Source of the DNA: Ophelia neglecta
Taxonomy: Eukaryota
Direction of reading: 5' to 3'
Assembly (NCBI GenBank): GCA_965285935.1
Contig: OZ260664.1
Span: forward strand, 78,120,001-78,184,000
Length of the DNA stretch: 64,000 bases
Shown here: positions 1-63,888 of the stretch, piece after piece
Position numbering within the stretch: position 1 is the first letter of the stretch
Layout: each line of letters opens with the position of its first letter
Program-made: the position numbers and the translations under genes
Notes under the pieces: generated by a model
What the model saw: the letters and a program-made list of their open reading frames with translations, nothing else
Database searches by the model: none
Told to the model about the DNA's origin: nothing

Positions 1-529
1 ATCATAAAAAATTTAACGATCTAAATATTTCATAATATTTATTGCTTATTCGAAGTATTGCAATATAATATGTAATAACATACGAGTTAATTATTAAAAT
101 AAAAAGTTACTAAAACAAATAACCGTGACTTGTGATAAAACTGCCTGCATTTTTTTTTCAATAAAACATGATCTTATATTCGTTATGTTATTAAAGTAGG
201 CTTAAAATACTGCTCTGACATTCACAGCTTCCTGTGGTGTCTCACTTGAGAACACGTTTACTTGTATGGCAGGACAAAACGGTGGTAAGACATGACGCAA
301 TATCAAAATACCAATATGTTTGTAATTACCATTGTTATATCTTTTTTTTCAAAGAAGGTCCTTGGCTCACTTTGTGGCTCAATTTGCAACAAATATCAGC
401 CTCACGAAGCACCTTTTACATATTAAGATATTAACAAATATCCAACTAAATGTGTCGGGAGTTCGTCAAAGATTTCCAGTTTTATCTACATATTCTGCTG
501 GGTTGTCAACGAATCTGATGTAAAATGGG

Positions 530-681
530 AGTGAAACCTGTGAATTAAGACCACCCAAGGGACTGGAAAATGCTGGTCTGATTTTTGAGGTGTTCTGTTT
601 AGACAGCATGGTCCCCAAATTAGTGATCTGAATTGACAGTTGGTCTGATTATAGAGGTGGTCTTTAAGGCAGGTTTCACTG
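530..681. mobile_element. Tc1/mariner-pogo-type MITE, family 1
   Basis: TIRs AGTGAAACCTG...CAGGTTTCACT with internal AGACCACC/GGTGGTCT motifs; related copies at about 6132, 21552 and 49322. Confidence 0.75.
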
Positions 682-2676
682 GGTTTTTTTGCAAGTACAG
701 TTGATTCGATGAAGAAAGTGCCACAAGCGCTCCTATCAACATCTACTTATCAGTTATTTGACATTCGATGTGTAGTGTCTCGAGAGTAATATTATCCGTT
801 GTAATTAGGTTTCCTTTACTGGTCCATCAAATCCGACTTCTCAAAAGTGAATATTTTCCTCGAGGCATATGCTTTACTAAAAAGGATGGGTTTGATAGTG
901 TATAAATTCCAAATAGTATCTGACCGTAACACTTAAAAATACCATGGAAAAACACCATGGTGATTTGTGTTATAAGTGCGGATGATATTAATATAGAATT
1001 ACCAGGATTTTTTCTCACCTTTCGTGTAGTATCTGTCAGATCCAGCTAGTCCAACCAGCCCAGTAATGAGTGTCGGATTCCTTATTTACATCATTTAATG
1101 TAGGCTAATGGCCCTCTTAACACACAATCAGGGCACCCGTATACCAACACACTGATGAATGTGCAATTTCAGAAAGATCACATCTTTTGCAGGCAGAAAT
1201 TATATAACCTAAAGTATAGGGGTTCACTTAACTAGTTTCGTAATTATGTCAGATTCTCGTGGGGAGAGGGGGGGAGCTCCATTATGTTGGTATACCCAGA
1301 CCTGCTGCTTACATGGGTGAGATTTTCAGAGTCGGTATATACCGGTATACATGCATGGATCCATTTTGGGCTAACCCTTAAATGGGCAGATGTATTTTCG
1401 GCAAACCTTACGTAAAAGGTTTTACGAAGATTAAATTAACATCTCTTCACATTTCACTCTGGCCGACAATAAATTTGATTACACTATCAATTTTGCCCTA
1501 ATCACAGATAGGGAGCGGTCACTATTTATCAACGGGGAGGAAGTGAGGGGGGGGGGGTGCTGGTTGAGGAAAAGGCATACAGTTTAAGCAATTTACCTTA
1601 ATATATAATTCAAATTACTGATAAACAAATTATCTTGGGAAACCCAATATAAATAAAGGACGGAACTAGCCACTCTCATGCCTATATATCTTTTTTGGAC
1701 GCCTGAAGTGTCTCCTATGTATTCATTTATGTTCCAACCTCCACCTGGATTGTAGTCGTAGTAATATCTGCGCATGCTCACTGACTGCTCGGTGGCGTCT
1801 ACTGTCTGCCCCCTGATTTATATGCCAACTCGTATTTTAACGTAACGTTGATTTTCTTACAATGTTTGTTAATCCTTCGTTTGTTGCAGGTCATTTGATT
1901 GCCTTCATAAACGGCTAGGCTCCCGTATCATGTTAAGTAAAGTTGATATAATCAACAAAAGGCAAAAAGACGAGAGGCCGAGCGTTGGTGATTTAAAAGT
2001 CACATTATATCACGCATAACGCACAGGTAGAAACTAAAGATTTCGTTATTTTATATTATATCTTACAATTGTATAGTAGTTTGAGTTATGTCGTGCTTAG
2101 TAGCGTCATACATATTGAACAAGTATATTTTCTGACGGAGGTTGAGCGTAATTTAACATAGGGGAGTAGTATAATATCAGCTCTGAGTAGGTTACTCTTT
2201 CAGGTTAGTAGTATCACAATATAGCGCCACGGAGTGTGAATTTGTGATAACGTACGAAATATAATGTGACATTCACTCATTGTATAAACAGTTATTTATT
2301 TCCTTCATTGAACATACAAAAATGCTACGTGTAAAATAAAACTTAAGAAATGTTGCCATGAGACATTCGACTTTTCATGATATAATTATATCCGTACTTA
2401 CACTGCATGGTGTTGATATTCCCCTTTTTAGATATGTTTGTACATATTTTGACTGTTTCTATATTGCACACAAAGTTTGGACATTCTGACATGCTGAGTT
2501 TTAATGTTCAACGTACTGAGAGATATCATCCGTATGAGCTGAGTTATTTTGGTCAATTCATCGTTAAATTAAATGTATATACAATAGTTATAAATAAATA
2601 CTTTTACAAAAATATTGGAAAATGACTTTTCCTTCGCGCAGACATACATTCATTTCTAGATATATACAAACATCAT

Positions 2677-5132
2677 TCAATCAAGCTGGGTGAAGAGTTC
2701 CGGCAGTGTGTGTCGGTCCACCTCGTCCATCCTTTGTATCATGTCAATACAATTGGCTACCTGTCGACTGCTTAGCCCGCCAGCCTGCGCGTTGGCAGAG
2801 AACTTCTTTTGGAGGTCGGCATCGCTCAGAGGCAGTCGCCAGTGACCGTATGGTGTCGTGCACTTCGCCGTGTACGAGCTGCCATCGCGTGTCTCTACGC
2901 CAACGCGCACGTACATCCGGTCAAAATTGGGGTCATTATCGGCAGGGGTCACTACTCTGGTGAGATCTAACAAACGACGCAGGGCTGGTCTCTGAATCAT
3001 ATCATCGCTGAATGAACTCGGCTGCACCATACCGTCCAGCAGTGTGACGCATGTGTTGAACTGAAAGCTGTGCCGGGCCGCGTGTTCGTCGACCGGCAGA
3101 GGGCGGTTGACATACTTAGAGTTGGGCGCGTCCACCACAATTTCCCGGATGTCGTCCACGGATAAGGGCCCCTCTCCGCGGACTATATGTCGTCTGACTT
3201 GGGCGGCGGCGTCTGAAGCCCAGTGCATACTGAGATGGGCTGGGATCCGTTTAAAGGCGATGTCCTGTATGTCCAGAGACCAACCACCTCGTGTCTCTTG
3301 TGCATCTTTTACCGAGATTGGATTGTAGTCTCGGAAATAGGCCCCAAAGCCCGCTTGGTTGTCCATGATCTGATCGCTCCCCCTTACTCCTGCGTCAGCG
3401 AGAAGTGCCGCCTCCAGACCGAAACGAGCTGAGTTTCCGGCATGTAGGGGTTTGGCTTTTGTACCAGCGTTGGCCATTGGCGCGCCAGCAAAGGAAGCAG
3501 CAATTGCGAGAGCGTGGCGACATCTCTCGGCATCCAGTCCCAGAAGTTTAGCACAGGCGGCGGCGCTTCCCATCACCCCAACAACGGCGGGAGGGTGGAA
3601 TCTGAATTGAGAAATGGTGTTTAATCAATACACACGACCAGTTCCAATTAACTAACCTCGAACTGTGACTCAAGTTAAGAACTAGTATGATTTATCAATT
3701 AACTTTATTAATAGACCTATCATTTTCACCAATACAAATATACATTCATGTTTTTTCTTATTAGAATATCACGTTTTAATCTAAGAATAAATTATAGTTT
3801 CACAGCACCCTCTGTTAGTAGTATAACATAGTTTGCCTTACCTGTTTGGTATTTGCTGAGCATTCTGAGAGAAACGAAGTAGTAGTCCTTGCACTTCGAT
3901 TCCGATGTTGTAGGCGAGTAGTATATCAGCGCCGGACACCCGGTACTTGCCTGGCATGGCCTCGGCCAGAGCCAGAATGGCGGGCAGCACGGGTCCGCTC
4001 GGGTGGGTCGCTGGGTGCCAGGTGTCGTCGAAATCCATAGCGTGGGTCATTACGCCGTTAGCGAAGGTAGCGCCGATCAGGGAGCTGCGGGGCGGGCTGG
4101 GTTGAGAGCGGCCCCACAGGGTACAGGCCGACCCCAGCTGGGACTGGCCGCCTCCCCCCAGTAGAGCGGCATGCTCCACCGCAGTCCGGGCTATCTCGGT
4201 GGTGCTCCCGATAAGCCCCACACCCAAACTGTCCAGCATCATCCGCTTACTTCGTTTTAACACCGTGCCAGAGATATCAGACAGACTGGCGCCGGCTACG
4301 AAGTCTCCAAAAGAAGTAGTCACATTTTCTTTTAAGACATTCACTGGCTCTGCTGTCCCTGGGAAAAGACGAAGAATATCAGCACGTTCAGCAGTCTGTA
4401 TATATAAGAATCGTTCTAACTAGAAAGTATAATCACTGGACTATGTTTAGTTTAAATCATTATTTTGTTCTTACTTACGTTGTGTAACTCTGGGGTTTCT
4501 TGATACCTCTACCCCCCCCCCCCTCCACACACACACACACCTACCTACAAACCCACCTCTATGGGTCCCCTCTCTTCGGGTTACCCGGTAAAACATTGTC
4601 TATTGAGTCTTACCTTCTGCCGATTGTTGTTGTGCCATAGGAGCCGTACTGTGTTGTCGATGTGACTCAATTTCTGGCGTGGTGACAGTGTGTTTCTCTC
4701 GGGCGGGAGATGCGATCATCTGGGTCCTGTGCCCAGTACATAATGTCGTTTTCTCAGCCAACTACAAAAGGTAAATGGGTCACACTTATATAAATCAATA
4801 ACAACTATGCCTATAGCTATCGCAATTATATTTTGTATAAGGCATTCGGGAACCAAAGGGAGCCTTTAGACATGAATTTCCGCGCGACTGTCTCAGCGAT
4901 CCTTTATTTTGCCACGCAAATTTCATAGTATACAGTTTCGACGTATTATATCCAAATAAAATCAAAAAATAAACAATTCGGCAGGTTTTATCGTCCAACA
5001 ACTGTGATTGCTTTAAAACAGAAAAACTGTTCTCCAATTTAACTTTTCAAAAAAGGACATGACACAGAAAATTACAAAATAGCTAAAATAAGAAATAGAA
5101 ATTTGTTTTACCTTCTTCGCGGAGCGGAGCAT
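2677..5132 (-). CDS. ACOD1: cis-aconitate decarboxylase (IRG1/ACOD1, MmgE/PrpD family), about 536 aa, 4 exons
   Basis: Exons 5132-5112, 4761-4614, 4358-3842 and 3601-2677 have GT-AG introns with consistent phases (1611 nt total). Motifs RSKRMMLDSLGVG, AMDFDDTWHPATHPSG, RFHPPAVVG (across a splice junction), AKPLHAG, FKRIPAHLSMHW, SKYVNRP and ARHSFQF cover the IRG1 active-site residues D93/T97/H103/H159/K207/K272/H277/Y318 (human numbering). Confidence 0.93.
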
Positions 5133-10649: not shown

Positions 10650-13600
10650 TCATCTAGAGAGATGCTCTGAGATCTCTGGCAGAGAGAACATTTCGGTGTT
10701 TATGTCATCTAAGTCAATGTCGTCGAAGGCGGGGTTATTGTATCCCTGCTCAGCGTCCCTGACGTCACCAATGACCTTGACATTGGCGAGGGGCGCGCCG
10801 TCATGGCCGACGATGATGTCTGGACTCAGCTGTGATAGCTGGCGTCTAACTGCCTCGGGAACTATTGTAAGTGGCTCCAGTGTTTTCTTGCCCTGGGTAG
10901 TGACTATTCCCTCTTCTTGCTTAGCCTGTTCAAAATGTTCCAAAACCTTGCTCTTTGGCATGATTCCTATACGAAAGAAGCCAATATCGCCACCTGTAGG
11001 CAGTCGTCTACAGTCAACCACTGTGGAAGCGGCATTTTCAGCAGAGGCGCCATCACACAGCACCCCGTCACACTAAAACAGTGAAGATTTTATTAGAATA
11101 TAATTAGAAAGAAATATTTTTTGTTACTGTTATTAATAAATGGATTCATTTGGGCCAATTTTGGAAACTTTTTATTGATTCAATTTATCTGGTTGGCTTC
11201 ATCTTTATAGGCCTAGGCCCAGGTCCATAACAACCGTAATTTATGTGTAAATTACATGATTAAATTAAAAAACAAACTATAATATGGACTACAAAGCTTT
11301 TGTTTTGAACATGTTTAGTGTGTCTAGTTGACTTACATTTTGTTCTTCGAGTCTGGCGAGGACCTGGGAGTGGTGGGTGGTGTCCGCCTCCCCCGAGGGG
11401 TTAGCCGAGGTGACCGCTATGGGGCCCACCTGGTCTATCAGGTGGGTGGTCACCGTGTAGTCGGGCAGGCGTACAGCTATACTGTCTGGCTTTCCTATAT
11501 ACTTCTCCGACTCACCCAGACCTAATTTTTCCAACCATGGCCCTGCCGGACGGAAATAGATGGGGGACATATTACATTAGTTTGTTGGTACATATATGGT
11601 GTAAATGGCAATAATTTTAATGGTGTATTTGGCCAGCATTGAAATCAAAGGGACATGATCTGATATCAAACTATTGTCCAATACTTCGCATGCATATCAC
11701 AGACAGGGTAAACTATTTAATCCTTGTAAAGTTCGTAAAAATTACCTTTTGGCACGACGAGACTGATAGAGGAGGGCCAGACTTTGTTCAGGAACCTCCA
11801 GAGGAGAGGGCCGAATTCCTGTCGGGCGTGTTCCAGCTGGTCCAGACTGGAGATCCACAGCGACATGGGCCTGTCTCCAGCCTGCTTCTTAGTGTTGTAC
11901 GCTCTCTGGAAACACAAAATTCCCTTACTAAAACCGGATTTTAAACAAGTGAAACGGAAACATCTTAAAATAAAATTTCTCTATATAAAGTGAGGCCAAT
12001 GGATTGAGTTAATATTCTATTTTCCTACTGCTATTTTTGCCGATGTGAATTTCAAGGGGACGTCATTTTGATAAGGAGGATGGCAAGTTTTGCTAACAAT
12101 AAGAAGTACACATCGTATGTTATTTACCTCAACGGCTTTAGGAAATTTGCAGGCGGCAACGAGAACGTAGACAGTATCTGTAGGAATCCCTACAATACCT
12201 CCCGAATTCAATATAGCTGAAAAAAGAATCCACAACTTGATTAAAATCGTTATTTCTATTGGTCAGATGAAAATTCGAATTAAATCCCAACGAGACGAGT
12301 CAGGATCATTCAAAAAACGGTTGGGGGTTTTAGGGAATAGAGAACAACTTAGGAACCAATGCGTAAAGTTGTACAGTCGTTTAGCTTTAGCATAAGATAT
12401 ATAAAACCGACGATTATATTTGCATACAAGTAAATACATATGCACAACTACCTACCAGCTATTTCCGAGACTCCTTTTGCTTTCTTGGAAGGCGCCATTA
12501 CGACCTTGCCGCTCTCATTTGCGCCATAGACCACTTTGATGATGGCTTTGCCGAGAGGAACAAGAGCACTGCCCAGCACAGATTTGGTGGCGGAGCCGAA
12601 AAAGGCGTAAAAGCAGACGACACTCAGGATGACTGTTAGGGCAATACTAGCTCCTTGTGGAGTGGAAGCTCCGCTGGAAACGCATATGACCAAAACTGGG
12701 TTGACTAAAAGCGCCACGGAATAGAAAAACCACACCTTTTGGATAACAAGTGACAGCGCGGCGAGCAAAAGACCGCCTAGAAGAAAGGCAGTAGGGCCCG
12801 CAGCAAGCTGGAAAGATCCACTAGAACTGGCCATTATCGGCCTACCCCACAGGAGCCAAAACATGCTATACATGATGAAACTGCAACTCTGCAATGACTT
12901 CCCGCGAGACAAACAGACACAACCGACGATGAACTGAATCACGCCACCTACAGGGAGTGTCCAAAACATACTACTGACCTGACCCTCCGGCGACAACCAG
13001 AGCACAGATACTGCAGCAATGGCATTAGTGAGGAAACCTACCATTTCTATTTCGCTGTATTTGGAAAAACCAAGAATATCAGATTCAAGTGTTGTGCTTT
13101 GAATTTTATCGGCAGCATTGTTATTGTTCTTGCTGCAACATGTCTTCAAACGATTCACGCCACTGACAATTTCCTTTGAAATGCCATCGTATTTACCTAG
13201 AGGCACCTTGGACGTTTTCAAACTAATAAGTAATGCGTAATGTAAGACACCATAAATAGTAATAAGCATTAAAATCCAGCACATGACAAGGAAAAACATA
13301 CTTTGGTAACCTTGAATGGCAAGGGCAATGGTTAATATAGTATAAACACTGCTTTGAATAATATGAAACAGTGATTCTTTTGCTGAAAGGATAGATGCAA
13401 ACACAAAGCAGACGGCCATGACACTGAGACTGGCTACATTGACGGGGTCGCTGACTCCTGAAATCAAACTCAGGCCACTACAGATCCATAATGAACCATT
13501 AAGCATGAAAAACACCGAGTGGAACGGAGCAATGTACCTCAAAATGGCTACCCACCCCACAAGTGTCATGACGCCAGACGCGATAAATGTCAAAGCAAAC

Positions 13601-14695
13601 GCCTCGTAAGATATAAGATCAGAAGTGCTTAGAAAGAGGGCGGGAAACACCGCTAAGAGTTGGCAGCAATATACAAAGAGTAAAAGATGAGCTGCACTTT
13701 TCTGAGACTGGGGTTGCTTTCCTTTAGGTTTATACTCTTTACTGGCAAATTTGACCTTTGTGAATGCACTTCTGACTGCAACAAACAGGGCTACAAGACT
13801 CAACACGGTGTTAACGGCTGCCGTACTCACTTGGTAGCTAGCCGGGGTGTACAGGCTGACTACAGCCAGGCTCCAAGAGGCCGCCCACAAAAACGAGATC
13901 AAGGCCAAGTCAAAAGCTTTTGCCGCCATGCCAAAGATCATGAAAGCAACAGATACAAATACAGAGAAGGCCAGGGTTGGAAGGAGAGCCAGTGAAGAAT
14001 TGGGCACATTGATGTTGGACGATATAGCAATACCACCCACTCCCAACAGGCTGGCACACAGACAAAGATGAAAGCTGACAAACAAACGGTTTCTAGGATC
14101 TTCATTCGTTCTACGTAATCCTGTGAAGAGAAAAACATACAAGTTGATGACAATATAAAAAGATTGTTGAGCATTAACTGTGAGCCTGCAAATGCCTTAG
14201 AACAAAAGCAAATATCCTTTTTTTAACCATGCGGGTAACTAAGACATGCTTTTATTTTACTACTGACACATTATCAAGGTATATGTTTTGGAGTTAAGTG
14301 ATCAAGTACTGGTAATGTGATGGATACATATCTTACGGTCAAGAGGTACAACAATGATATCTAAACTGATCTATATGTCTTAAATGTTTGCTGAAGAGCA
14401 CGTGATAGACTGTAGTTCGTTATTGGTTCTATCGTTTGATAGAGCTATGTATCTATCACCAGTAGGCTATATGTCGATTGCTTTTAATTTCGTATGCAAT
14501 AGTATTGAATGTATTAAATAAATACGTTAAACACTCACCGAAGAGGAGTTGGACGAGAGCGAGCAGTGCGAGAAGGACGCCGGATTCTAGATTGCTCCAC
14601 ACGTCAGCCAAGCTCCACTGCTGTGCTGCTAGAATGGCCGCAGCCCCCGCCCCGAGGGACACCATCGCCGTGTTCTCAACACTAAGCTGGGCCAT
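10650..14695 (-). CDS. Polytopic membrane protein A: three diverged SatP/GPR1-FUN34-YaaH-like repeats, Sua5/YrdC domain and acidic tail; about 899 aa, 6 exons
   Basis: Exons 14695-14539, 14120-12456, 12216-12128, 11905-11746, 11542-11337 and 11072-10650 have GT-AG introns in phase (2700 nt). YrdC motifs: GIPTDTVY, VWPSSISLV, IAVRLP, TSANPSG, ASTVVD, FRIG. Repeat 3 has PVGGVIQFIVG...SFIMYSMFW and ends LVPLG; repeat 2 ends KVPLG. Confidence 0.85.
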
Positions 14696-16146
14696 CTTAG
14701 ATCAAATGTCTCTATGGTGTTGTCTCTTTAATCGTAAGTAATATCTTGACTTCTCAAAGATATGCGGAAAACTGAGCTATGGATCTGGGTAAAGTAATTT
14801 ATATCAACTTAGAACCGGGTGCGGGAATTTCATCGTGGTTATCTTGGTTTCCGGAATTGCGCTTGGTGCTCACAGGCACGCGTCCAATGTTAACGCGCTG
14901 TGTTTAAAATACGGAATTCCCGTGTAGCTGACACACGGTCGCCCTGACATAGCGAGCCGGACTAGTTTATTTCACCTATTCAGGTATCTATACGGACGAG
15001 TAAACATAGTGAATGTCGCGTACCTTCAAATCAACAGGACATGCTTAGGAGTCAGGCGCACATTGGCCAGCGACCAATCAGAGACAGCATACACCTTCAT
15101 TGAGAAATCCCTACCTTTGACAAGTGCGTCAACGCACGACTAAATAAACTGGCCCTGAACAGCAAGGCTATAATTTATTTACGAGTTCATTACATCTGTT
15201 GGCATGCGTGTTTGTATATTTTGGTTGCTTCCTGCTGTTTAGCATTGGAGTGATTGGGAAATTGATGAATAAGACTCCCGCTATAGACCGCCGTGACTGT
15301 AGTAATGTTCAGGGTAATCCCGAGTCTCCCGTCATCCGTGGGCTGGTGACTTGCTCAGACACACAGCACAATAAATAAAAGTCGGTGGGAACAAATCATC
15401 TCATATCTTTGGCAGAAGTCATTGAGACAGGACGAGAGACAGAAACAAGTCAAATAATTATAAGCAGGCTTACTGAAGGAGCTTATATCTCCCTAGTTCG
15501 ATTGTTTAAGCTGCGTGTTTAACTCATTTTACGACCTATTAGAAAATACTGAGGGTCATATCACATAAGGACAGAACATAATTAGGTAAGATTAGCGTAT
15601 GTATTTTTGGTTTTATTTTCAGATTTATGTTGCTAATTTATACTTTTATATAGTCATCGAAATTCAGAATTTGTTCACGATGCTCCTTTGTGTTATTATG
15701 GTTTTCTTCAATCATTTTTTTGTCGAAATTTAAGAGGAGTTTAATCACAGACGCGTGTATTCTAACCACTTTATCGTTTAATGCTTGCTTTCAAATGTAA
15801 AGAACATATTTCCTACATGTTATGTCCATGTAACGAAGAAAGTTTTAAGCACAGCCAATTGTGACTTTTTTACTTGAACCAGCCCTTCGAATTTTATCAG
15901 TAGCCATTCTTATAATGAATTGGAATAAACGAATAATGCTGTGTGTTTTTAGCAAGATGCATTATCGCTTCTTTCTTTTATTTTGTATAGCAACTTATCC
16001 GTGTAGAAGTATGTGTTACTTATATAAAGGCACACCAGGCGTACAATTTAAAGCTACATCTTTGTGCCTATACTTATCAATTTAGTTTATCTTTACCCGT
16101 CTTCTGATTGATTGTTTCAGATTAACTGTCATCGCTATAATTGAAA
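14696..16146. promoter_or_regulatory. Shared bidirectional promoter region of the two channel-YrdC paralogues, including the 5'UTR intron of gene B
   Basis: Head-to-head ATGs 1.45 kb apart. Minus-strand TATAAAT at 14797-14803; kappaB-like 10-mers at 14823, 14912, 15102 and 15312; CCAAT boxes near 15060-15080; UTR splice donor AG|GTAAG near 15585 and acceptor TTTCAG at 16120. Confidence 0.55.
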
Positions 16147-19100
16147 ATGTCCGGTGTAGATTCTGACGGTAATCGGGCGTTTGCCGCCATCTTGTATGCC
16201 GAGCCTGGCTCCCTCGGCTTACTGGCCAATGTCCTCTCAGCCTTCGTGGTGGCCATGCAGAACTTCCTCCCAGGAACTGACATGGAGCCTGCAGCATACC
16301 TCATGGCTGGTAGGTTCATTGTATAGTCGTCATGTGCCCTATCATTTTACTTACAATATACGTCGTATAGATGGGTTGCCGAATTTATCACTTTTCGTGA
16401 GTTTGCATTTGCCGCTTGCAGTAGAACGCTTACGTCACTGCATTGGACGTCATAACGGCAATCCAGCCAATTGGCGCCGCGCGGAGTGACATCCGAACGG
16501 AATCTCCATAACAACAGTATCCAATGCAGTGACGTACGCGTTATACTGCAAGCGGCAAATGCAAACTCATGAAAAGCGATAAATTCGGCGACCCATCTAT
16601 ACGACGTATATTGTAAGTAACGTACACTTGCCGCCTTAACAGACACCGCTTGTCAATGTCTTAACCATTCGGGTATTTTTGTAAATGTACTCCTCTTCCA
16701 AAATAATATTGACTTATATATAATTAACATTTATATTCGAAACTTTTCCGAATTTGTACACGCGCTTTAAAGCTTTGTATTTTGTAATACAGATACTTTA
16801 CAACGTATAAATATAAATAACAATATTATCAAATACTAAGCTTTGAATCTGAACTGTATATATATAGTTATACCTACAAACAATTTGTGTACGTCTGTAT
16901 TGGAGTGTAGACTTGTTTCCGCTTCCAGGGAAATGGTTAGTTTGTCTCCGCTCTGTCTAAAACTGAAATAATTAAACTATTTTGATCTATTTCAGGTTTC
17001 CATTTAATACTGATCGGAGGAGTCGTTCAGCTGATTGCCGGCTTCCTGTCCTTTCGTAGAAACGATCATCTCAGTGGCACCGCTTTCCTCAGCTTTGCCG
17101 CCCTATGGACAGCTCAGGGCATCTTGAAGGTGCTGACGCCCCAGTTTGCCGCCAATCTCTGGTTTCGCCCGTCCGTTCTGACGGGAATGGTGGGGTTCTG
17201 TGTTGTTGCTGTGGTTCTATTCGGAGCGGGACTGACCGTAAACTACCTCATGCCACCTGTTTTGGTCGCCATGTTTATTAGCTTGGTATTCGAGTCTGTT
17301 GGGTTGTATTATCCTTGGGCTTTGTATGTTGCTGGTGCTTTCGAGATGTTAATCGTCATTGCTGGCATTTACGGCGCATGCGCGTCCATGCTGCGCGGTA
17401 TCTCCCAAAGATATGTATGGCCGGGATTTGGCAACGCCCTGGTGAACGTTCTGCTAATTAAAACTAAGACTGCCCCTAGATCAAAGATGGAGGTGAAAAA
17501 GAACACGAAATATGCTGAACCCATGGCTTTGGGATACTTATGTAATCTGATTCCCTCCGCCATTTTGGCTTTTTACAGTTTGGGCTTTGCTTCTGCTTAC
17601 CAGCTGAGTTTTGTCTGGGTACTGGCTGTCCTGCCCTGTCAGATGTTTGCCAGTTTCTACGCCTACCTCCGTGACGACATGTATCACGCTGCGACCTTCA
17701 TGTCCTACCTGGCCGTCTGGCTCGGGAAACTTGGAACGGAATTCATTTTCGCCCCAAACCCTATTTTCACCCCTGCTGTGGAATGGACGCCATCTTTGTT
17801 TGGAGTCTGGGCCATGTTCTTTGTAATGGTTGTCATCACCATTGTCTCCCTTTCGAGAGACGTTGTGTCTTTTGTCGTAAACCTTTCGTTTCTAGTCCTG
17901 CTGGTCCTCGGGTACGAGTCCATTCCTTCCCCTGTGTACGGTTATACGTTTGGTGTGGCTAACGTCATCGTTTTCTGTGTGTCGTCTTACGCAGCTGTCA
18001 GTTCTCTCATCAACTCCATCGCCGAGAAGCCTGTTATCCCAGTGGGCTGGGAAATTGTCTCCCTAGATTCATTAGTCACTGGGCTCCTCAAGCTACGGTG
18101 CATGACTACCGAACAGTAAGTACATTGTCCTGCACCTGTATTTGTGAATCATCAGATCTTTGTTCATCTACTCAGCAACTCAATCCATTGAACTATGATA
18201 AAAAATTATCGTTTCTTTTTATTCCAGGCTAAACAAACATGTGAAAACCAAATCAGAGATACCACAGGTTCTTTCGCTGACCTCTCTTGCGGTTTGCTCG
18301 CTATATGGCGCCACCTGCGATGTCACTTCCGGCTATGCCGCTTTGTCTTGGATACTGGGCAGTGGCGTCATCCTACAATTGTACGCAGCTCGTTGCGCCT
18401 ATGGAAGCGGAAATATGACTCGGACCTACATTTCGTCGGTGTTCGCATTATTCTGGGCAGCATGGGCTTACAAAATCATAACGGGTAAGCGAGAAAGACA
18501 TTACTTTCCGCATTGAACGGTTATCAACTCATGATCTCTTAATCATCATGATTGAAATTGGTACATGTTTAATCGTCCTGCTTTTTTTTGCCTTCCAGGC
18601 GCTGCCACCCCTTTAATGACGTCAGTTATTCTTGTTGTCCTCGGTGCCTTTGTCGTATTTGCCTCCGCGGCGTTCTCTGTCGTCTGGCTTTTGACCTCCC
18701 TCCTCATGGAGTTAAATATCGTCTGTCTTTTGATTATGTCTATTGGCGTGTACCCACAATACCTCGCGCTAGTCTCCATGATGGGTACAAGTAAGTTTAC
18801 CTTACTGTTTCGTATTTCAGCAATAAAATTGAAAGGCTTCTGTTGTACATTTTTCTTGTTGACCACACCTTTTGCCATCTAACCCCATATTAAAATGTTC
18901 CAATCCATATTGCCTCAATTTTAGGGAATTTCTAACACTGTGTTTCCGCTTTGCAGGTTTTGTAGCATTTTATGGAGCCGTTGCACTGTTCCTTAACTCT
19001 ACATGTGACCTTGACATTCTCCCAATCGGATCCCCCATTTTCGCTGTAAGTAGACAATCCCTATAGGCCTACCTTTATACGTCGTCTGACCTGGCTATTT

Positions 19101-20587
19101 TTGTATACGAGCAAAAGGTTCAGCTTTTACCACCCCCAGTCGTAATCTGACTCCAGTAGACTTAATATAAGTAGAATTTTAAGTGAAACACTGCTGCAGG
19201 AAAGGCGGATTATAGTTCGTAAGTAGAATTTTCAACTTTAAACCAATTTTTTATATATATATCTACAGATCAAGAGTAAGATGTTGGCCAGAAAGCAAGA
19301 GGCCGAGACGGCTAGCCCTCCATGCCCCTTGTACTCGTCTAATCTGACCAGCGGTCTGAGGGGCATGGCCGACCTCCTCGACCAGGGAGCAGTCACCGGC
19401 ATACCAACCGACACCGTGTACGCGCTGGCCGCCAGCTGTAAACACCCGGACAGCATCGAGCGTCTGTACAAGATCAAAGAACGTCCGGCCGAGAAACCCA
19501 TCTGTCTCTGTCTCAGCTCCCTAGAGCAGCTCAAGGATACTAACCCCGATTTCAGCCCGCTGCTCTGGCGCTTCATGAGGAACTGTTACCCAGGCGGTAT
19601 CAGCTGTGTGGTACCTAAAGGGGAGTGGCTGAAGAGACTGGGTGTAGGAGAGGCGGCTAGCTATGTAGGCACCCCGGCCAGCGTCTGTATCCGGGTACCA
19701 GACAGCACTGTTGTAAGCCACCTAGTGGCTATGACCGGCCCTATCGCCATCACGTCCGCCAACCCCAGTGGCGAGCCAGATAGCACACACCACGATATGG
19801 TCATTGACCGGCTAGGTAAGCTTTTTATTTCTTTAAAATTTGCACTAAATTGAGAGGCTACTCGGGAGCAGTTTTTTCTTATCCCATATCTTATTGCAAA
19901 TTATCTTGAAAAACAAGATGTTTATACAAGAGAAAGTCCATACGAACGTAAAGAGCATGCAGAGAGGATATTTCGTCAAAGAATACTAGAATATTGTATT
20001 ATTTCACCACCATTAGTACATATATCTTCCAAAATCTTTAAGGTTTAAAAACAATACGTACGATATAATTTCCTATGTATTCATTTGATGTTTGCTTAAC
20101 CAGGACACAAACTTGGAGGTGTTTTATGTGACGGGCCCTCTAACCACAGTGTCGCTTCTACTGTGGTCAGCTGTGCCAAGATAGATGAAGGTACGTGCCC
20201 ACACTTACACAGTTACACACGTATATCAAAAAATCATATCACCCTACATGTAAATTAACTACATGTATAACAGAAGCCTGTTTTTGAACACTTATATTGA
20301 TGAATCTAACTTCATTGAATTCAACCGTAAAAAAGCCTTTCAGAGACCATGGTATATTATTTTAAAACGTGTATACCCTATTTTTAACCTTAGAATAACT
20401 TGAATTTTGCAATCAATGCTTAATGCACTGTCTTGTAACAAGTACATAACTATGGCCCTAGTTGATTGTAAAATTGACTTTTTCAGGGGTGCTGACTTAC
20501 TTCCGCATCGGCTGTGTGCCAAAGGAAGTTGTCGAGGCTGTGTTCGAGAAAACAAAAAGAGAAATGGCAGCCGACGCCGCCGCCTAA
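16147..20587 (+). CDS. Polytopic membrane protein B: three SatP/GPR1-FUN34-YaaH-like repeats and Sua5/YrdC (threonylcarbamoyl-AMP synthase-like) domain; about 851 aa, 8 exons
   Basis: Exons 16147-16309, 16996-18115, 18228-18484, 18599-18790 (alternative donor 18784), 18957-19045, 19269-19815, 20104-20190 and 20487-20587 are in phase (2556 nt). SatP-like motifs: AEPGSLGL, IGGVVQLIAGFLSFRRNDHLSGTAFLSFAALW, AEPMALGY, INSIAEKPVIPVG, FYGAVALFLNSTCDLDILPIG. YrdC motifs: PTDTVYAL, KERPAEKPI, YPGGIS, IRVP, TSANPSG, ASTVV, FRIG. Confidence 0.88.
16347..16620. mobile_element. Foldback MITE with about 100-bp inverted repeats in the first coding intron of gene B
   Basis: TTACTTACAATATACGTCGTATAGATGGG...CACTGCATTGG is mirrored by CCAATGCAGTG...CCCATCTATACGACGTATATTGTAAGTAA. 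Confidence 0.85.
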
Positions 20588-25918: not shown

Positions 25919-26087
25919 TGGTGTCAGATGCGGAATCAAGACAAGGCTAGTGACAACTTTATTTCGTGGAACAGCCACCCAGGGCTACAATACGGTGAAA
26001 TTCTACGACTAGTACAGTGACGTCATCGTCAGCTCTGACAGCTTGGCTCTACGCATAAATTAACCTACTATTTTGACAACTACAACA

Positions 26088-29000
26088 ATGGCGGAACTTA
26101 CCGGCATTCCCGTGCCTTCTATGGACTGGCAGTCAACCAATTTACCGGAGGTTTTTCGGAGGTTTAAACAGACATGTCAATACATCTTCGACGGACCATT
26201 AGCTGACAAAAACGAGGAAATAAAGGTACAGTACCTTATGTTATGGATAGGCGAAGAAGGCCGTGACATCCGCGAAACATGGAATTTAAATGCTGATGAC
26301 AAGAAAAAACTTAATATCCATTGGGAGAAAATAGAAGCATATGTCAAGCCCAAATCTAACTTTCGTGTAGCACGATTTAGACTTAGAGCTCTAAGACAAG
26401 AGGAAGGGGAGTCAGTAGACGCTTTTATGACGAAGGCACGACTTCTAGCTTCAGAATGTAACTTTACAGACACCGACGAACAGCTCCTAGAAACTCTCAT
26501 TGCTGGCATACACAATGAAGATGTTCAAAGGAAACTCATATCTAAGGATGACACATTGACACTTCACCAAGCATTGACGCTCGTGAGGACATATGAGGCT
26601 ACACAGAACCAAATGAATGACATTCAAGGGACTAAACATGTTCAAGCACTGAACAGAAATTACAGAGGCCGTCAGAAAAATAAGTACTATGTCAAACCCC
26701 CAGTACAAAAGGGCAAATGTTGGAATTGTGGAGGTGAACACCCCCGTGACTCTAAATGTCCAGCAGAGCATGACAGATGTGACTTCTGCACCAAGGTCGG
26801 ACATTGGGCTAAGGTATGTTTAATGAAACAAAATTCACAGAATACCGATAATGACAACAACCCATATAACCATAAGACACGATCCAGGACAGGTGATAAA
26901 CAAAACTACAAGTCACGACAAGGCAAAAAAGTACACACCCTTAACGATGATCAGAGTGACAATGATGATATTTCACAGGCTTCCAATGACATGGGAGAAT
27001 TCACGTTTGACACAATTGAAACTATCTACAAACAAGGCCACAATGATCAGGCATTTGCAAACATAAATATTGTGACAGATAGGGGTGTTTACAGTGTCAA
27101 GTGTAAAATCGATACCGGAGCACAATCAAACGTTATGCCACTCAGAGTATACAAACTCTTATTCCCGCAAAACATTGACAGAGGAAGACCAAACAATTTA
27201 CAATCAAGTAGCGAGAAATTGAGAGCTTATGGTGGAAACGAAATAAAACAATATGGTAAATGTCAATTACCATGTTCACACAAAAACAAGAAATTACTGC
27301 TTGATTTCTACGTAACAGAAGCTACAGGAAACACAATGCTAGGACTTCGGTCAAGCATAGACATAGGACTTGTTACACTGAACTGCGAAAGCAAAGACAG
27401 CTGTGAGCAGTGCCATGACAAAAGCCAAATACATTCAGTAGGACTTGTCTCTGATAAACCGAAACAGGAATTGATTGACAAATATCCAGACTGTTTCAAA
27501 GGGGTTGGATTGTTTCCAGGTAAATATCGAATAGAACTCAGGCCAGATGCAGAATCTGTCATTCACCCACCGAGGCGGGTACCAGAAGCTCTAAAAGACA
27601 AGCTGAAAGTCGAACTTGATAGAATGGAAAACATGGACATAATTGAAAAGGTCGACTGTCCAACCGACTGGGTCAACAATCTTGTTTACATCACAAAACC
27701 TAACGGGGACCTGCGAATTTGTCTCGATCCAAGAGAACTGAACAAATGGGTCAAACGAGAACACCATTACATGCCAACATTGGACGATATACTACCACAA
27801 TTAACAGATGCGAAAGTGTTTAGCATCATCGATGCTCGATCTGGTTACTGGAACGTCATGCTTGACAAAGATTCTAAACATCTAACAACATTCAACACCC
27901 CATACGGGAGATACTGCTTTAGGCGGCTGCCATTCGGAATAAAGTCGGCGCAGGACATTTTTCAAAAAAAGGTAGACCAGACTTATCAAGGGCTGACAGG
28001 CGTTTGTGGCATTGCCGACGACATCATCGTCCATGGACCAAACAATGAGGCCCATGATGAAAATTTACTTCGCATGATGGATAGAACCAGAGAAGTCGGA
28101 CTGGGCCTCAACCCAGAAAAGTGTGTTATCAAAACAGACCGAATCAAGTTCTTTGGAAATTACTTGTCTGCAAAAGGACTTGAACCAGACCCAGATAAAA
28201 TAGCTGCTATTACAGATATGGAGGCACCCGAGAACCTGACACAGTTACAGACATTCCTTGGGATGGCCAACTACTTAAGCAGATTCACAAACAACTTATC
28301 TGCTTTATCAGAGCCTTTACGCAAGCTAGGAAAACAGGACTCAGACTATCAATGGCATCATGAACACCAACAGGCATTCGAAAAAATGAAGGCAACCATA
28401 TCTTCATCACCTGTACTGAGATACTATGATGCACAAAAGCCAATCACTGTTCAAGTGGACGCGTCAAAACGCGGACTTGGATCTATACTACTACAGGACA
28501 AACAACCTGTGGCTTTCGCAAGTAAAGCCCTCAGTGAGGCAGAATCCAACTACTCCAATATTGAACGTGAGATGCTTGGAGTCGTCTTCGGCTTGAAAAG
28601 ATTTCACCACTATGTATATGGACGGAAGGTCACAGTTGAAACGGATCACAAACCACTGGAAAGTATTACGAAGAAAAGCATTTCTAGCGCCCCTCCACGC
28701 CTCATGCGCATGCTCCTTCAAATACAGCAGTATGACTATGACGTGAAATATGTTCCAGGCAGAGATATTCCCGTGGCCGACGCACTCTCTAGATCTCCAA
28801 CCCAGGGGGAAGAAATGCCTGATATGGATATAACAGTTCATGAACTTGTGAATGTAACTCCTAACAGATTACAACAAATAAAAGCCCTCACCCGTCGAGA
28901 CGAAACTCTACAAAAACTAATCGACACTGTCATGACAGGATGGCCCAACCTGTACAGGGATTGCCCAGTTGAAATCCAGAAATATTGGAACTACCGCGAT

Positions 29001-30176
29001 GAGATAAGCATCTATGACGGGGTATTGCTGAAGGGAGATCGGGTAATTATACCAAAGACACTACAGGAAGAAGTCCTTAAACAGATACACACGGGCCATC
29101 AGGGAATTGAGAAATGCCGACTAAGGGCAAGAGCCTCAGTGTTTTGGAGTGGAATCAACTCAGACATCGATCTCATGGTGAAAAGCTGCTCTGCTTGCCA
29201 GCACAATAAACCATCACAACAGAGGGAGCCACTCATTCACATGGATGCTCAACAGCCATGGTCAATAGTTGGATCTGACTTATTTCACTGGAACAAGAAT
29301 GACTATTTGATACTGGTCGACTACTTCAGTACATTTACTATTGTACGAAAACTTGAATCCACCAAGGCCCCACCAGTCATCAATAAGCTGAAAGCTATCA
29401 TGTCTGAGTACGGCATACCACTTACACTCGTAAGCGATAATGGGCCACAGTACAGCTGTAAGGAATTCAAGGACTTTGCAGACCAGTACGGATTCCGACA
29501 CATTACTAGCAGTCCTCACTTCCCACAAGCAAATGGTCGCACAGAAAAACATGTTGGAGACACAAAGAAAACACTACAAAAAGCCCTTGAGGACAAGCAG
29601 GACGCTGCTATGGCATTACTATGTGTCAGAACAACACCTCTGGACCACGGACTACCTTCACCAGCAGAACTGCTATTCTCCCGCAAACTACAATCCAACC
29701 TTCCAGTCGTCAATGTGAGGAAGGAAAGGGATGATATAACTCAAAGAATGCAAACCAGGCAAGCTGACTCCGAAAAACATTACAATTCAGCAGCTATAAT
29801 ACTGCCAAAACTGGAGACTGGCCAATCCGTGAGAATCCAGGACCCAGTAACAAAGAAATGGGAACCAGCTCGCGTACAACAAGAATGCTTTCAACAACCG
29901 AGATCATATATTGTTGAAGGCAAATCAGGAGCCACGTACAGGAGGAACCGGAAACAGATCAGGACCACCGGTGAAACTTTCGACCCCCAGACATGCGGTC
30001 GAAATCCGAACATCAGCGAACCAGACCATGACAATGAAACACCGGATACACCAATCAGTGACGCCCACAATTCATCAAATTCGACCGCCAGTATGATAAA
30101 GACACCCTCCAAAAATAGTGGTCATACTACTAGATCAGGACGCGCCGTCATCGCTCCTCAAAGATTAGATTTGTGA
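26088..30176 (+). CDS. Gag-Pol polyprotein (Gag with two zinc knuckles, protease, RT, RNase H, integrase)
   Basis: Single ORF, first ATG at 26088. Motifs CWNC..H..C and CDFC..GHW..C, DTGA protease, LPFG and IADD RT, DAS...TDHKPL RNase H, H..H..C..C and SDNGPQY integrase, in Gypsy domain order. Confidence 0.95.
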   Translation: MAELTGIPVPSMDWQSTNLPEVFRRFKQTCQYIFDGPLADKNEEIKVQYLMLWIGEEGRDIRETWNLNADDKKKLNIHWEKIEAYVKPKSNFRVARFRLRALRQEEGESVDAFMTKARLLASECNFTDTDEQLLETLIAGIHNEDVQRKLISKDDTLTLHQALTLVRTYEATQNQMNDIQGTKHVQALNRNYRGRQKNKYYVKPPVQKGKCWNCGGEHPRDSKCPAEHDRCDFCTKVGHWAKVCLMKQNSQNTDNDNNPYNHKTRSRTGDKQNYKSRQGKKVHTLNDDQSDNDDISQASNDMGEFTFDTIETIYKQGHNDQAFANINIVTDRGVYSVKCKIDTGAQSNVMPLRVYKLLFPQNIDRGRPNNLQSSSEKLRAYGGNEIKQYGKCQLPCSHKNKKLLLDFYVTEATGNTMLGLRSSIDIGLVTLNCESKDSCEQCHDKSQIHSVGLVSDKPKQELIDKYPDCFKGVGLFPGKYRIELRPDAESVIHPPRRVPEALKDKLKVELDRMENMDIIEKVDCPTDWVNNLVYITKPNGDLRICLDPRELNKWVKREHHYMPTLDDILPQLTDAKVFSIIDARSGYWNVMLDKDSKHLTTFNTPYGRYCFRRLPFGIKSAQDIFQKKVDQTYQGLTGVCGIADDIIVHGPNNEAHDENLLRMMDRTREVGLGLNPEKCVIKTDRIKFFGNYLSAKGLEPDPDKIAAITDMEAPENLTQLQTFLGMANYLSRFTNNLSALSEPLRKLGKQDSDYQWHHEHQQAFEKMKATISSSPVLRYYDAQKPITVQVDASKRGLGSILLQDKQPVAFASKALSEAESNYSNIEREMLGVVFGLKRFHHYVYGRKVTVETDHKPLESITKKSISSAPPRLMRMLLQIQQYDYDVKYVPGRDIPVADALSRSPTQGEEMPDMDITVHELVNVTPNRLQQIKALTRRDETLQKLIDTVMTGWPNLYRDCPVEIQKYWNYRDEISIYDGVLLKGDRVIIPKTLQEEVLKQIHTGHQGIEKCRLRARASVFWSGINSDIDLMVKSCSACQHNKPSQQREPLIHMDAQQPWSIVGSDLFHWNKNDYLILVDYFSTFTIVRKLESTKAPPVINKLKAIMSEYGIPLTLVSDNGPQYSCKEFKDFADQYGFRHITSSPHFPQANGRTEKHVGDTKKTLQKALEDKQDAAMALLCVRTTPLDHGLPSPAELLFSRKLQSNLPVVNVRKERDDITQRMQTRQADSEKHYNSAAIILPKLETGQSVRIQDPVTKKWEPARVQQECFQQPRSYIVEGKSGATYRRNRKQIRTTGETFDPQTCGRNPNISEPDHDNETPDTPISDAHNSSNSTASMIKTPSKNSGHTTRSGRAVIAPQRLDL

Positions 30177-42493: not shown

Positions 42494-43183
42494 ATGTCTT
42501 TGATAAATTTCAAAAGCGAGAACGCCAAGGGAGACTGTCCTGCTGTGTTGGTCAAGGGAGGGGAGATAGGAGTGATCGTCCTTCAGGAGTGGTGGGGGCT
42601 GAACGATCAGATCAAGGAGGAAGGGGCCGACATCTCTCGCCGGGGAAACTTCACTGTCCTCATCCCTGATCTGTACCGCGGAAAGGTGGCCACCGACCGC
42701 GAGACGGCCGGACATTACATGAATGACCTTGACTGGCCCGGCGCTGTGAAGGATGTCAAGGGGGCAGCGCAGTACCTTCTGGCCAATGGCTGCAAGAACG
42801 TAGGTGTAACCGGCTTTTGTATGGGAGGCGCCCTCTCAATGGCGGCCGCCGCAATGGTACCGGAAGTAAAAGCATCTGTTCCATTTTACGGCATTCCAAG
42901 CGCCGAGCTTTGCGACGTGTGTACCATAAAATGCCCTATGCAGTGTCATTTTGGGGAGAAGGATGAATTAGAGGGGTTTTCTTCACCGAAGGACTATAAT
43001 GCTCTTAAGGAGAAGCTATCCAAGGCCAAAGTCCCCTTCGAGTTGCATACCTACCCCGCTGGTCACGCCTTTACCAACCGGACAGGACCCCTGGAAAACT
43101 ATAATGAGGAGTGTACCGAAAAGGCTTTAGACCGCATGGCCGCTTTCTTCACGGAAAAGTTGGGCGAAAGCAGTAAAATGTAA
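42494..43183 (+). CDS. Dienelactone hydrolase family protein (usf/CMBL-like alpha/beta hydrolase), 229 aa
   Basis: Motifs QEWWG, PDLYRG, GFCMGG nucleophile elbow, FGEKD and AGHAF give a complete Cys-Asp-His triad. Single coding exon with a UTR acceptor TTTTCAG just upstream. Confidence 0.92.
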   Translation: MSLINFKSENAKGDCPAVLVKGGEIGVIVLQEWWGLNDQIKEEGADISRRGNFTVLIPDLYRGKVATDRETAGHYMNDLDWPGAVKDVKGAAQYLLANGCKNVGVTGFCMGGALSMAAAAMVPEVKASVPFYGIPSAELCDVCTIKCPMQCHFGEKDELEGFSSPKDYNALKEKLSKAKVPFELHTYPAGHAFTNRTGPLENYNEECTEKALDRMAAFFTEKLGESSKM

Positions 43184-63000: not shown

Positions 63001-63888
63001 ACTGTAGTGGTATTTGGCGTAGTTGTCAGTGCTGGGTGAAGCTGACCTTGTCCTACGGTGGCAGGAGCAGACGACAGACCCTGCTGTTGTTGCTGGTGTA
63101 ATCTGTGCATGTTTTGAGTGACCTTGTTGGCCAGCAGACTCTTAATGAGGTTTGAGTCGGGTGGCTTGTTGCTGGTGGGCGAGTTAGGCCCCGGTGAGCC
63201 CGGCTGCTGGGGTACTCCGGGCCCGGGCTGGTTTAGCAGGGCTTGTTGGATGGTTGGGTAGCTGGTCGGGCTGATAGGCCCACTGGGCCTCTCCTGGATG
63301 GTCGGTGACATGGGTGGGGAGGCTAGCCGCTGCTGTATGGCTGTGTGGAGCATGCCCCGGGCGTTGGTCTGGGCAGGGACTATGTGACGCTGTGCACCCC
63401 TCCACTGGTCTGAGCTCCGCTGGCCAGTAGAGGAGCCCTGTGCAGGGAGACTAGACACCACAGTAGTACTTATAGGAGGCCTCATCAGGGGCTTCTGCAC
63501 TACCCGACCATCTAAAATGTGTAAAAAGATTGATTAGTAAAAACATTGTTTCATCAGATGGTACTCATAAAGGATATTTAACTACCAGAAAACGATTTCC
63601 TCCCTTCAGTGATCATGCTTGTCTCTATAATGTTAAAATGTAGACACAACATTGTCTTAACTTTATATGTGTTATTGTACAGAATTTTTCCTTTATTTGG
63701 TAAAGCTTAAACATAAATTGTTGCCATATCACTAATCAGATGGCAAGGACAGTGTCTGACCTGAGACTGGTGTGGTGAGAGCAGGGAACGGCAGGGGCAC
63801 ACTGCGTCTCTGGAGCCCCTTGTACTGGATGTCCACTGTACCGTCAGATTTGTCTATTCTTTGGTGCTCGACACGAGGAAATGCTAGC
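57035..63888 (-). CDS. ARID2: ARID2/BAF200 (PBAF subunit), 3' part; the gene continues beyond the window end
   Basis: Exons 63888-63761 (end of the RFX-like domain, AFP...[12 protein letters not shown]), 63511-59662 (Q/P-rich, then YWCDWKGC), 59087-58949 (C2H2 fingers), 58559-58371, 57511-57420 ([19 protein letters not shown]) and 57140-57035 (stop); phases are consistent. The 3'UTR probably extends to the AATAAA near 54971. Confidence 0.9.
57794..57929. mobile_element. pogo-type MITE in an ARID2 intron
   Basis: TA-CAGTAAAACCTG...CAGGTTTCACTG-TA with internal GGACAC repeats. Confidence 0.7.
60775..61110 (-). repeat. Coding 21-bp minisatellite encoding GQPQQAM, about 15-16 copies, in ARID2
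   Basis: CCCATGGCCTGCTGTGGCTGT unit repeated in frame within the large ARID2 exon. Confidence 0.9.

Follow-up and report, generated by a model that had tools for sequence, protein, structure and literature searches.

The urea channel UreI of Helicobacter pylori has been solved as a hexamer in which every protomer has a pore. Bacterial SatP, of the SatP/AceTr family (PF01184; TC 2.A.96; PDB 5YS3, 5YS8, and 5ZUG), is like UreI a homo-oligomer, and every SatP monomer contains a separate pore that has four substrate sites and is constricted at its centre by F17-Y72-L131 (PMC8379382). For the yeast and Candida proteins Ato1, Ato2, and Ato3, physical interaction and mixed hexamers have been proposed. 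More recently, Ghasemi et al. (bioRxiv 10.1101/2025.05.26.656167; iScience June 2026, PMC13316224) described the "vertebrate Atos", proteins of about 900 residues in which three six-helix Gpr1/Fun34/YaaH domains are followed by a C-terminal Sua5/YciO/YrdC domain ("Ato x3 + Sua5/YrdC"). Two clades were reported across the major vertebrate lineages, mammals excepted, possible gene transfer was proposed for the few protostome sequences, and a "dimerization hypothesis" was presented in which a pair of chains makes up a ring of six domains resembling the SatP hexamer, derived from an AlphaFold model placed on that hexamer (PMC13316224, Fig. 7C). This report concerns two divergent genes, A and B, in a 64,000-nucleotide stretch of Ophelia neglecta DNA (contig OZ260664.1, positions 78,120,001 to 78,184,000, forward strand; hereafter the window). 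The window is eukaryotic and contains no N letters, and the gene pair spans its positions 10,650 to 20,587.

A and B are ordinary members of the recently described Ato x3 + YrdC family. They encode 899 and 851 codons, respectively, each has three tandem six-helix domains and a C-terminal PF01300 domain, and each falls inside one of two clades, which from the gene names appear to be the two clades of Ghasemi et al. The architecture and the idea of a 3+3 dimer ring are already published and only the heteromeric version of that idea is new; the terms heterodimer, synteny, and itaconate are absent from the main text of PMC13316224. A and B are ancient paralogues of the fusion that have been linked ever since. 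The explanation that best accounts for the evidence presented here, with a probability of roughly 0.4, is that two chains close a six-pore ring, with a slight lean towards the pairing of A with B.

Splice junctions were picked using the reading frame, the GT-AG rule, and agreement with orthologues. Searches and structure predictions were run exon by exon, and the joined frame was used only for counting codons, stops, and hydrophobic segments. The resulting GT-AG models comprise six coding exons on the minus strand for gene A and eight on the plus strand for gene B, with no internal stops in either. Exon 1 of gene A is alignable to the N-termini of A-clade orthologues, and the exons of gene B are collinear with full-length orthologues (44% identity of exon 2 to Argopecten B). 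The three repeats of each chain are numbered R1 to R3 from the N-terminus, and the features of the pair are as follows.

14539 to 14695, minus strand: gene A exon 1, with the ATG at 14695 and donor GTGAGT; N-terminal part of R1, about two membrane helices.
12456 to 14120, minus strand: gene A exon 2, an open reading frame (ORF) of 564 amino acids; remainder of R1 (14118-13738), R2 (13698-13183), and R3 (13080-12532).
12128 to 12216, minus strand: gene A exon 3; linker and start of YrdC (PF01300, 2.9e-5).
11746 to 11905, minus strand: gene A exon 4; YrdC (PF01300, 2.1e-5), with a K-K-Q motif at 11893-11876.
11337 to 11542, minus strand: gene A exon 5; YrdC (PF01300, 3.1e-9), 68-77% identity to A-clade orthologues.
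10650 to 11072, minus strand: gene A exon 6; end of YrdC, C-terminal tail, and stop; ORF with tblastn and blastp matches to A-clade orthologues.
14696 to 16146, no strand: divergent intergenic region of 1,451 bp between both start codons.
16147 to 16309, plus strand: gene B exon 1; start codon, N-terminal R1, and NPAPLGL-like motif, aligning to B-clade N-termini.
16996 to 18115, plus strand: gene B exon 2; remainder of R1 (to 17444) and R2 (17502-18059); PF01184 at 4.7e-5 and 23.5 bits on the R1 part.
18228 to 18484, plus strand: gene B exon 3; first half of R3 (PF01184, E 0.017), aligning to R3 of B orthologues.
18599 to 18790, plus strand: gene B exon 4; middle helices of R3, donor CAA|GTAAGT, aligning to B orthologues.
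18957 to 19045, plus strand: gene B exon 5; last helix of R3, aligning to B orthologues.
19269 to 19815, plus strand: gene B exon 6; linker and most of YrdC (PF01300, 4e-31), with the KxR motif at 19470-19487.
20104 to 20190, plus strand: gene B exon 7; YrdC, 71-77% identity to catfish B.
20487 to 20587, plus strand: gene B exon 8; end of YrdC and stop codon.

Each chain consists of 18 membrane helices, arranged as three SatP/AceTr-like six-helix units and followed by the C-terminal YrdC domain, which bears out the three repeats per chain described in a first-pass annotation of this DNA. The AlphaFold2 model of gene A exon 2 had a mean predicted local distance difference test score (pLDDT) of 81.4 and a predicted template modelling score (pTM) of 0.84, and contained 16 membrane helices in a 4+6+6 arrangement; the count for the gene is 18 because exon 1 supplies the N-terminal part of R1 that is missing from this arrangement. 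The six best PDB matches to this model found using Foldseek were all SatP. A R3 was superposed on SatP 5ys3 using VIA-align with a Z score of 20.2 and a root-mean-square deviation of 2.3 Å over 169 of 182 residues, and A R2 folded alone (pLDDT 86.6) matched SatP with a Z score of 15.8 over 160 of 182 residues and UreI with the same Z score. The six-helix fold of the repeats is shared with SatP (Z 15.8-20.2) and with UreI (PDB 3UX4 and 6NSJ; Z 14-16); UreI, in contrast to A and B, carries urea and has no fused domain, and no sequence relationship to it was detected here.

That exon 2 of gene A is modelled with confidence as one chain (pTM 0.84) could also be read in favour of each chain alone being a three-pore protein, with repeats that close on themselves or form an open arc, no six-unit ring, and YrdC acting in cis. 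This is improbable: the structurally closest solved folds, SatP and UreI, were both solved as hexamers, and a six-domain ring was the arrangement proposed by Ghasemi et al. from their AlphaFold model on the SatP hexamer.

Profile-profile comparisons were performed using hhalign, with profiles built from alignments of both clades. Repeats in the same position of A and B matched with probabilities of 95.7% (R1-R1), 98.4% (R2-R2), and 99.8% (R3-R3, E 1.6e-27), and for each repeat the same-position repeat of the other paralogue was the best match or among the best; the triplication therefore preceded the A/B duplication. Against a profile of single-domain SatP, R1, R2, and R3 scored 89.3, 94.8, and 98.5% in A and 99.3, 97.0, and 95.6% in B, and for the repeats of B the SatP fold was assigned using this comparison alone (95.6-99.3%). 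A R1 is the most degenerate repeat, as had been noted in the first pass, with 89% to the SatP profile and weak matches to every other repeat; this is a feature of the whole A clade and not of the window gene alone.

The homology of the A and B membrane parts is visible only through intermediates and profiles. BLASTP gave no match between the membrane exons of A and B, a sequence search of gene A against the PDB gave none, and the Pfam SatP model did not match the whole membrane exons. The best single exon reached 23.5 bits with PF01184 (the R1 part of B) against a cut-off of 25, and the others reached 12.8-15.2 bits or nothing; these scans were exon-wise, so that repeats spanning an intron were incomplete in each. 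An exhaustive HMMER search with B exon 2 retrieved full-length relatives of 814-896 residues as well as single-domain SatP-type proteins of about 210-250 residues, of which one (P0034) matched PF01184 at 3e-24 and another (P0043) matched solved SatP structures at 1e-14. A word-index protein search found no relatives either with A exon 2 or with an alignment of five A-clade exons, and yielded matches only with the YrdC region of a full-length orthologue as its target; hydrophobic words swamping the index are, we think, the reason for the blank searches.

Compared with SatP/AceTr, A and B retain remnants of the motifs of transmembrane helices 1 and 3 and profile matches of 89-99%, but carry three units per chain fused to an enzyme-like domain. 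The NPAPLGL(M/S) signature is intact in none of the repeats: B R1 and R2 keep x-E-P-x-x-L-G, with Glu replacing Asn, and B R3 and A R1-R3 hold only fragments of the motif. In a mapping whose register at the first position is uncertain by about 3 residues, the full F17-Y72-L131 constriction is likewise present in none of the six repeats, and B R1 (N/F/L) is the repeat nearest to SatP. The pores are probably not as wide or as polar as those of SatP, in one direction or the other, and closure of some is possible.

Both chains end in a YrdC domain, as the first-pass annotation had it. PF01300 scored 108 bits in B and 24-37 bits in each matching exon of A (three of the four YrdC exons, 3e-9 to 3e-5), and the orthologues gave 1e-21 to 1e-38. 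A KxR motif near the domain start is conserved in the YrdC/TsaC/Sua5 threonylcarbamoyl-AMP synthases. The YrdC of B has the canonical K-E-R, and in A the corresponding K-K-Q belongs to a K-K/R-Q replacement that extends throughout the A clade, from snails to vertebrates. The remainder of the A-clade domain is about 55-62% conserved between snail and vertebrates, so the altered motif is of long standing, has been maintained, and is no sign of decay in this genome. Both YrdC domains would be cytosolic, because the SatP topology has an even number of helices.

No intron position is common to A and B. The two introns that come closest are separated by about 3 codons and differ in phase, just 5' of the conserved Gly-Val-Leu-Cys-Asp-Gly stretch of YrdC, and together with the blank BLASTP comparison this agrees with the earlier view that the two genes differ greatly in sequence and intron positions. 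No further paralogues were found in the genome itself, where besides A and B only one canonical YRDC gene is present, elsewhere on the same chromosome.

Relatives of B are the "si:ch211-153b23.3" proteins of fishes and proteins of amphioxus, scallop, oyster, and pearl oyster. Relatives of A are the "si:ch211-153b23.4" proteins of sharks, lampreys, amphibians, reptiles, birds, coelacanth, basal teleosts, and platypus, and are also present in gastropods, cephalopods, bivalves, and amphioxus. The phylogeny (maximum likelihood, 29 sequences) took as its root three protist and metagenome proteins that have the same fusion. SH-aLRT support was 100 for clade A and 99 for clade B, and each clade contained molluscs, amphioxus, and vertebrates in species-like order, unlike the essentially vertebrate family seen by Ghasemi et al. 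Window A was placed inside the mollusc A group (support 100) and window B as sister to the bivalve B genes (99). With all three groups in each clade, the A/B duplication predates the mollusc-chordate split, and the great age that had been suggested for it is confirmed. On this sequence evidence, the mollusc genes look vertically inherited and not transferred.

Two further observations were made on the distribution of the family. A full-length clade-A protein of 878 amino acids is present in the platypus (Ornithorhynchus anatinus LOC100084527, P0126) and grouped with reptile and bird sequences in the tree, whereas the family was stated to be absent from mammals (PMC13316224). Proteins from metagenomes and a marine protist transcriptome (P0033, P0039, and P0041; 861-1,138 residues) also place YrdC after a long SatP-like membrane part; the fusion may predate animals or may have passed from one lineage to another.

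The two clades differ in which repeat is best kept. Mollusc-versus-chordate identity for R1, R2, and R3 was 21, 21, and 34% in A and 45, 30, and 21% in B, so that the gradients run in opposite directions, with R3 best kept in A and R1 in B. Superimposed on this is a rapid change of window A, whose terminal branch of 1.8 is four times the median of 0.46; the branch of window B is not long. R1 and R2 of window A have about 20-22% identity to the other mollusc A genes, which share 27-34% among themselves, and several near-invariant motif residues of the clade are altered in these two repeats. Gene A of the window could on these grounds be under relaxed constraint or have acquired a new function, such as that of a regulatory or scaffold subunit whose pores do not work, which would make the 3+3 symmetry only formal. 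Such a role is quite unlikely, given the intact 899-codon frame with canonical splice sites, the well-kept R3 (33-35% identity) and YrdC (about 65-79%), and an R2 that folds confidently as a SatP-like unit.

Gene order was compared across other genomes, as follows.

Argopecten irradians: head-to-head A and B, 519 bp apart.
Saccostrea echinata: head-to-head A and B, 356 bp apart; locus numbering points to a second pair of this kind.
Patella vulgata: head-to-head A and B, 880 bp apart.
Haliotis rufescens: head-to-head A and B, 1,092 bp apart.
Branchiostoma floridae: ACOD1-like (minus), B (plus), A (plus); A and B adjacent in tandem, the MmgE/PrpD (ACOD1-type) gene and B in head-to-head orientation.
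Catfish and penguin: ACOD1-like (minus) divergent from B (plus); no A within 10 kb.
Goose and Paramormyrops: the divergent neighbour of A is a 224-residue gene, with a faint DJ-1/PfpI match in Paramormyrops; no B within 10 kb.
Shark, octopus, and Candidula: nothing related within 10 kb of A.

In the window, an ACOD1/IRG1-type MmgE/PrpD gene lies downstream of A (2677-3576 and 3838-4344, minus strand; Pfam 1e-32 and 3e-31), and an ACOD1-like gene is head to head with B in amphioxus, catfish, and penguin (loci L016 4403-7728, L017 4941-8778, and L022 1-1540). The linkage of A, B, and ACOD1 is ancient and spans molluscs to birds. Among the genomes compared, the head-to-head arrangement of A and B with a short spacer was found only in molluscs, and the putative shared promoter is a mollusc feature and not a property of the whole family. 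The start-codon gap of 1,451 bp agrees with the 1.45-kb region from which divergent transcription had been proposed. It compares with 356-1,092 bp between called gene ends in the four molluscs; the usual yardstick for bidirectional-promoter pairs is opposite-strand transcription starts less than about 1 kb apart. The spacers of the window, Argopecten, Saccostrea, Patella, and Haliotis had no k-mers in common above shuffled controls. The expectation of the first pass that A and B orthologues would co-occur as adjacent pairs held for these four molluscs, head to head, and for amphioxus, in tandem; in the seven other animals listed, no partner was found within 10 kb. The names of the zebrafish.3 and.4 genes, which derive from one bacterial artificial chromosome clone, suggest from naming only that these are near each other.

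Several side observations concern these loci. The 224-residue neighbour genes are located at L021 3487-7182 (minus strand) and at L023 5801-7542 (minus) and 1-1462 (plus). In Paramormyrops a PhyH gene lies just beyond the 224-residue gene; it may be related to a PhyH-type pseudogene of the window and to a zebrafish PhyH-like gene listed beside.4 in a figure of the Shigella-infection transcriptome. Tachysurus vachellii has at least four clade-B genes (P0054, P0061, P0063, and P0004) with at least 90% identity on one chromosome (locus tags 013710 to 013727), a local expansion with no A gene visible nearby. Bird models annotated as "YRDC protein, partial" (P0029, P0030, and 115 cluster members) jump from R1 to the second half of R3, and yet all three B repeats are encoded at the penguin locus (L022 9361-18401), where one exon of 1.5 kb has 53% identity to catfish B; the short models are either clipped annotations or a real short isoform.

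The preferred explanation can be set out as a sequence of steps. An ancestral gene, already triplicated and fused to YrdC, duplicated before the mollusc-chordate split, and its copies have stayed linked. One chain would form half a ring, and two chains would complete a six-pore ring above two YrdC domains, on the pattern of the SatP and UreI hexamers. The first-pass annotation had suggested that A and B may form one pseudo-hexameric channel. Its tally of 3+3 SatP-like units plus two YrdC domains is correct, but "one channel" is wrong: each SatP unit has its own pore (PMC8379382), so that two triple-unit chains would together make a ring of six pores. A and B may co-assemble where both are expressed, towards which there is a slight lean, and homodimers would also be possible. 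In an A:B ring the best-kept units would be neighbours, because a head-to-tail arrangement brings A R3 against B R1, and the canonical YrdC of B would sit beside the altered YrdC of A.

An A:B heterodimer is plausible, if tentatively so. In its favour are the retention of both clades, still linked, the opposite conservation gradients, and the YrdC motif change across the whole A clade. Ato1, Ato2, and Ato3 offer a precedent for heteromeric rings; unlike A and B, these have one unit each, lack a fused YrdC, and are close relatives of one another. COL4A1 and COL4A2 are head-to-head paralogues with a short shared upstream region, and the co-assembly of their products into collagen IV is proven. 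A and B are likewise divergent paralogues, but their co-assembly is hypothetical and their head-to-head layout was found only in molluscs. In zebrafish, fold changes over 18 conditions were correlated between.3 and.4 (r = 0.79) and between each of these and irg1l (about 0.9) (PMC8877790), and the listing of.4 in the zebrafish Shigella-infection figure points the same way.

A number of points weigh against this explanation. The zebrafish correlation was drawn from genes pre-selected as differentially expressed, and even in the absence of pairing the gradient pattern would be expected with a chance of about 2 in 9. The 10 kb around the gene held no partner in catfish, penguin, goose, Paramormyrops, shark, octopus, or Candidula, and A and B are separated by more than 10 kb in several vertebrates. 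Copy numbers are not 1:1, with at least four B copies in Tachysurus and at least two A copies in amphioxus species. The branch of window A, four times the median while that of B is not long, fits poorly with tight co-evolution. A complex prediction for Argopecten A R2-R3 (P0085 195-610) with B R1-R2 (P0002 1-415), performed without family alignments, gave 0.01 against a mark of 0.34 and weighs neither way.

Much of the same evidence bears on separate homodimers, A2 and B2. The ancestral triple-repeat protein would itself have been a homodimer, its paralogues would later have specialised in substrate, tissue, or membrane, and their linkage would reflect co-regulation in an ACOD1-centred neighbourhood and not pairing. 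This is a real possibility that nevertheless falls short of being favoured. It fits the homo-oligomers formed by SatP and UreI (PMC8379382), the different divergent neighbours in chordates (ACOD1-like for B, the 224-residue gene for A in goose and Paramormyrops), the independent variation in copy number, the fast evolution of window A but not of B, and membrane parts that have diverged beyond BLASTP detection. It is less easily reconciled with two clades that have been kept and linked since before the mollusc-chordate split, with the head-to-head pair kept in Argopecten, Saccostrea, Patella, Haliotis, and the window, with the complementary conservation gradients, or with a YrdC motif change across all of clade A.

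The cargo would likely be a small carboxylate. Acetate and succinate are the substrates of SatP, and a neighbour of the itaconate-synthase family is conserved beside the pair, which makes itaconate or a related carboxylate a reasonable candidate. Itaconate is methylene-succinate, a close analogue of succinate. The cargo is possibly itaconate made by the linked ACOD1-like enzyme. A more far-reaching version of the preferred explanation would have A and B as obligate partners of an asymmetric six-pore ring since the bilaterian ancestor, with A contributing mainly R3 and a non-canonical YrdC and B mainly R1 and the canonical YrdC; the ring would work with the linked ACOD1 on itaconate or a related carboxylate, as an immune-metabolic module lost in placental mammals. 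Taken as a whole, this version is unlikely.

Other reading frames were noted elsewhere in the window. An intact 1,367-codon polyprotein ORF of Ty3/gypsy type (26073-30176, plus strand) encodes reverse transcriptase, RNase H, and integrase. The AT-skew peak at 26-30 kb was considered as a third paralogue and rejected, as the peak is due to this retrotransposon. A single-exon ORF of 229 codons at 42494-43183 (plus strand) belongs to the dienelactone hydrolase family (PF01738, 3.5e-45). An ORF of 1,284 codons at 59646-63500 (minus strand) lies in a GC-rich stretch (50-60%) and has a weak GLTT-repeat match; it may encode a repetitive protein or be a spurious frame.

The family represented by A and B joins a carboxylate-channel fold to a tRNA-modification enzyme fold and is widespread, occurring in molluscs, amphioxus, fishes, amphibians, reptiles, birds, and the platypus. 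To the authors' knowledge, the ancient A/B split, the mollusc head-to-head pair, the ACOD1 linkage, the opposite gradients, and the A-clade-wide YrdC motif change are new. The tree corrects the published suggestion of gene transfer for the protostome members. The questions raised are whether the chains co-assemble, which pores still work, and whether itaconate is the cargo, and the new comparative results make that of A/B co-assembly testable.

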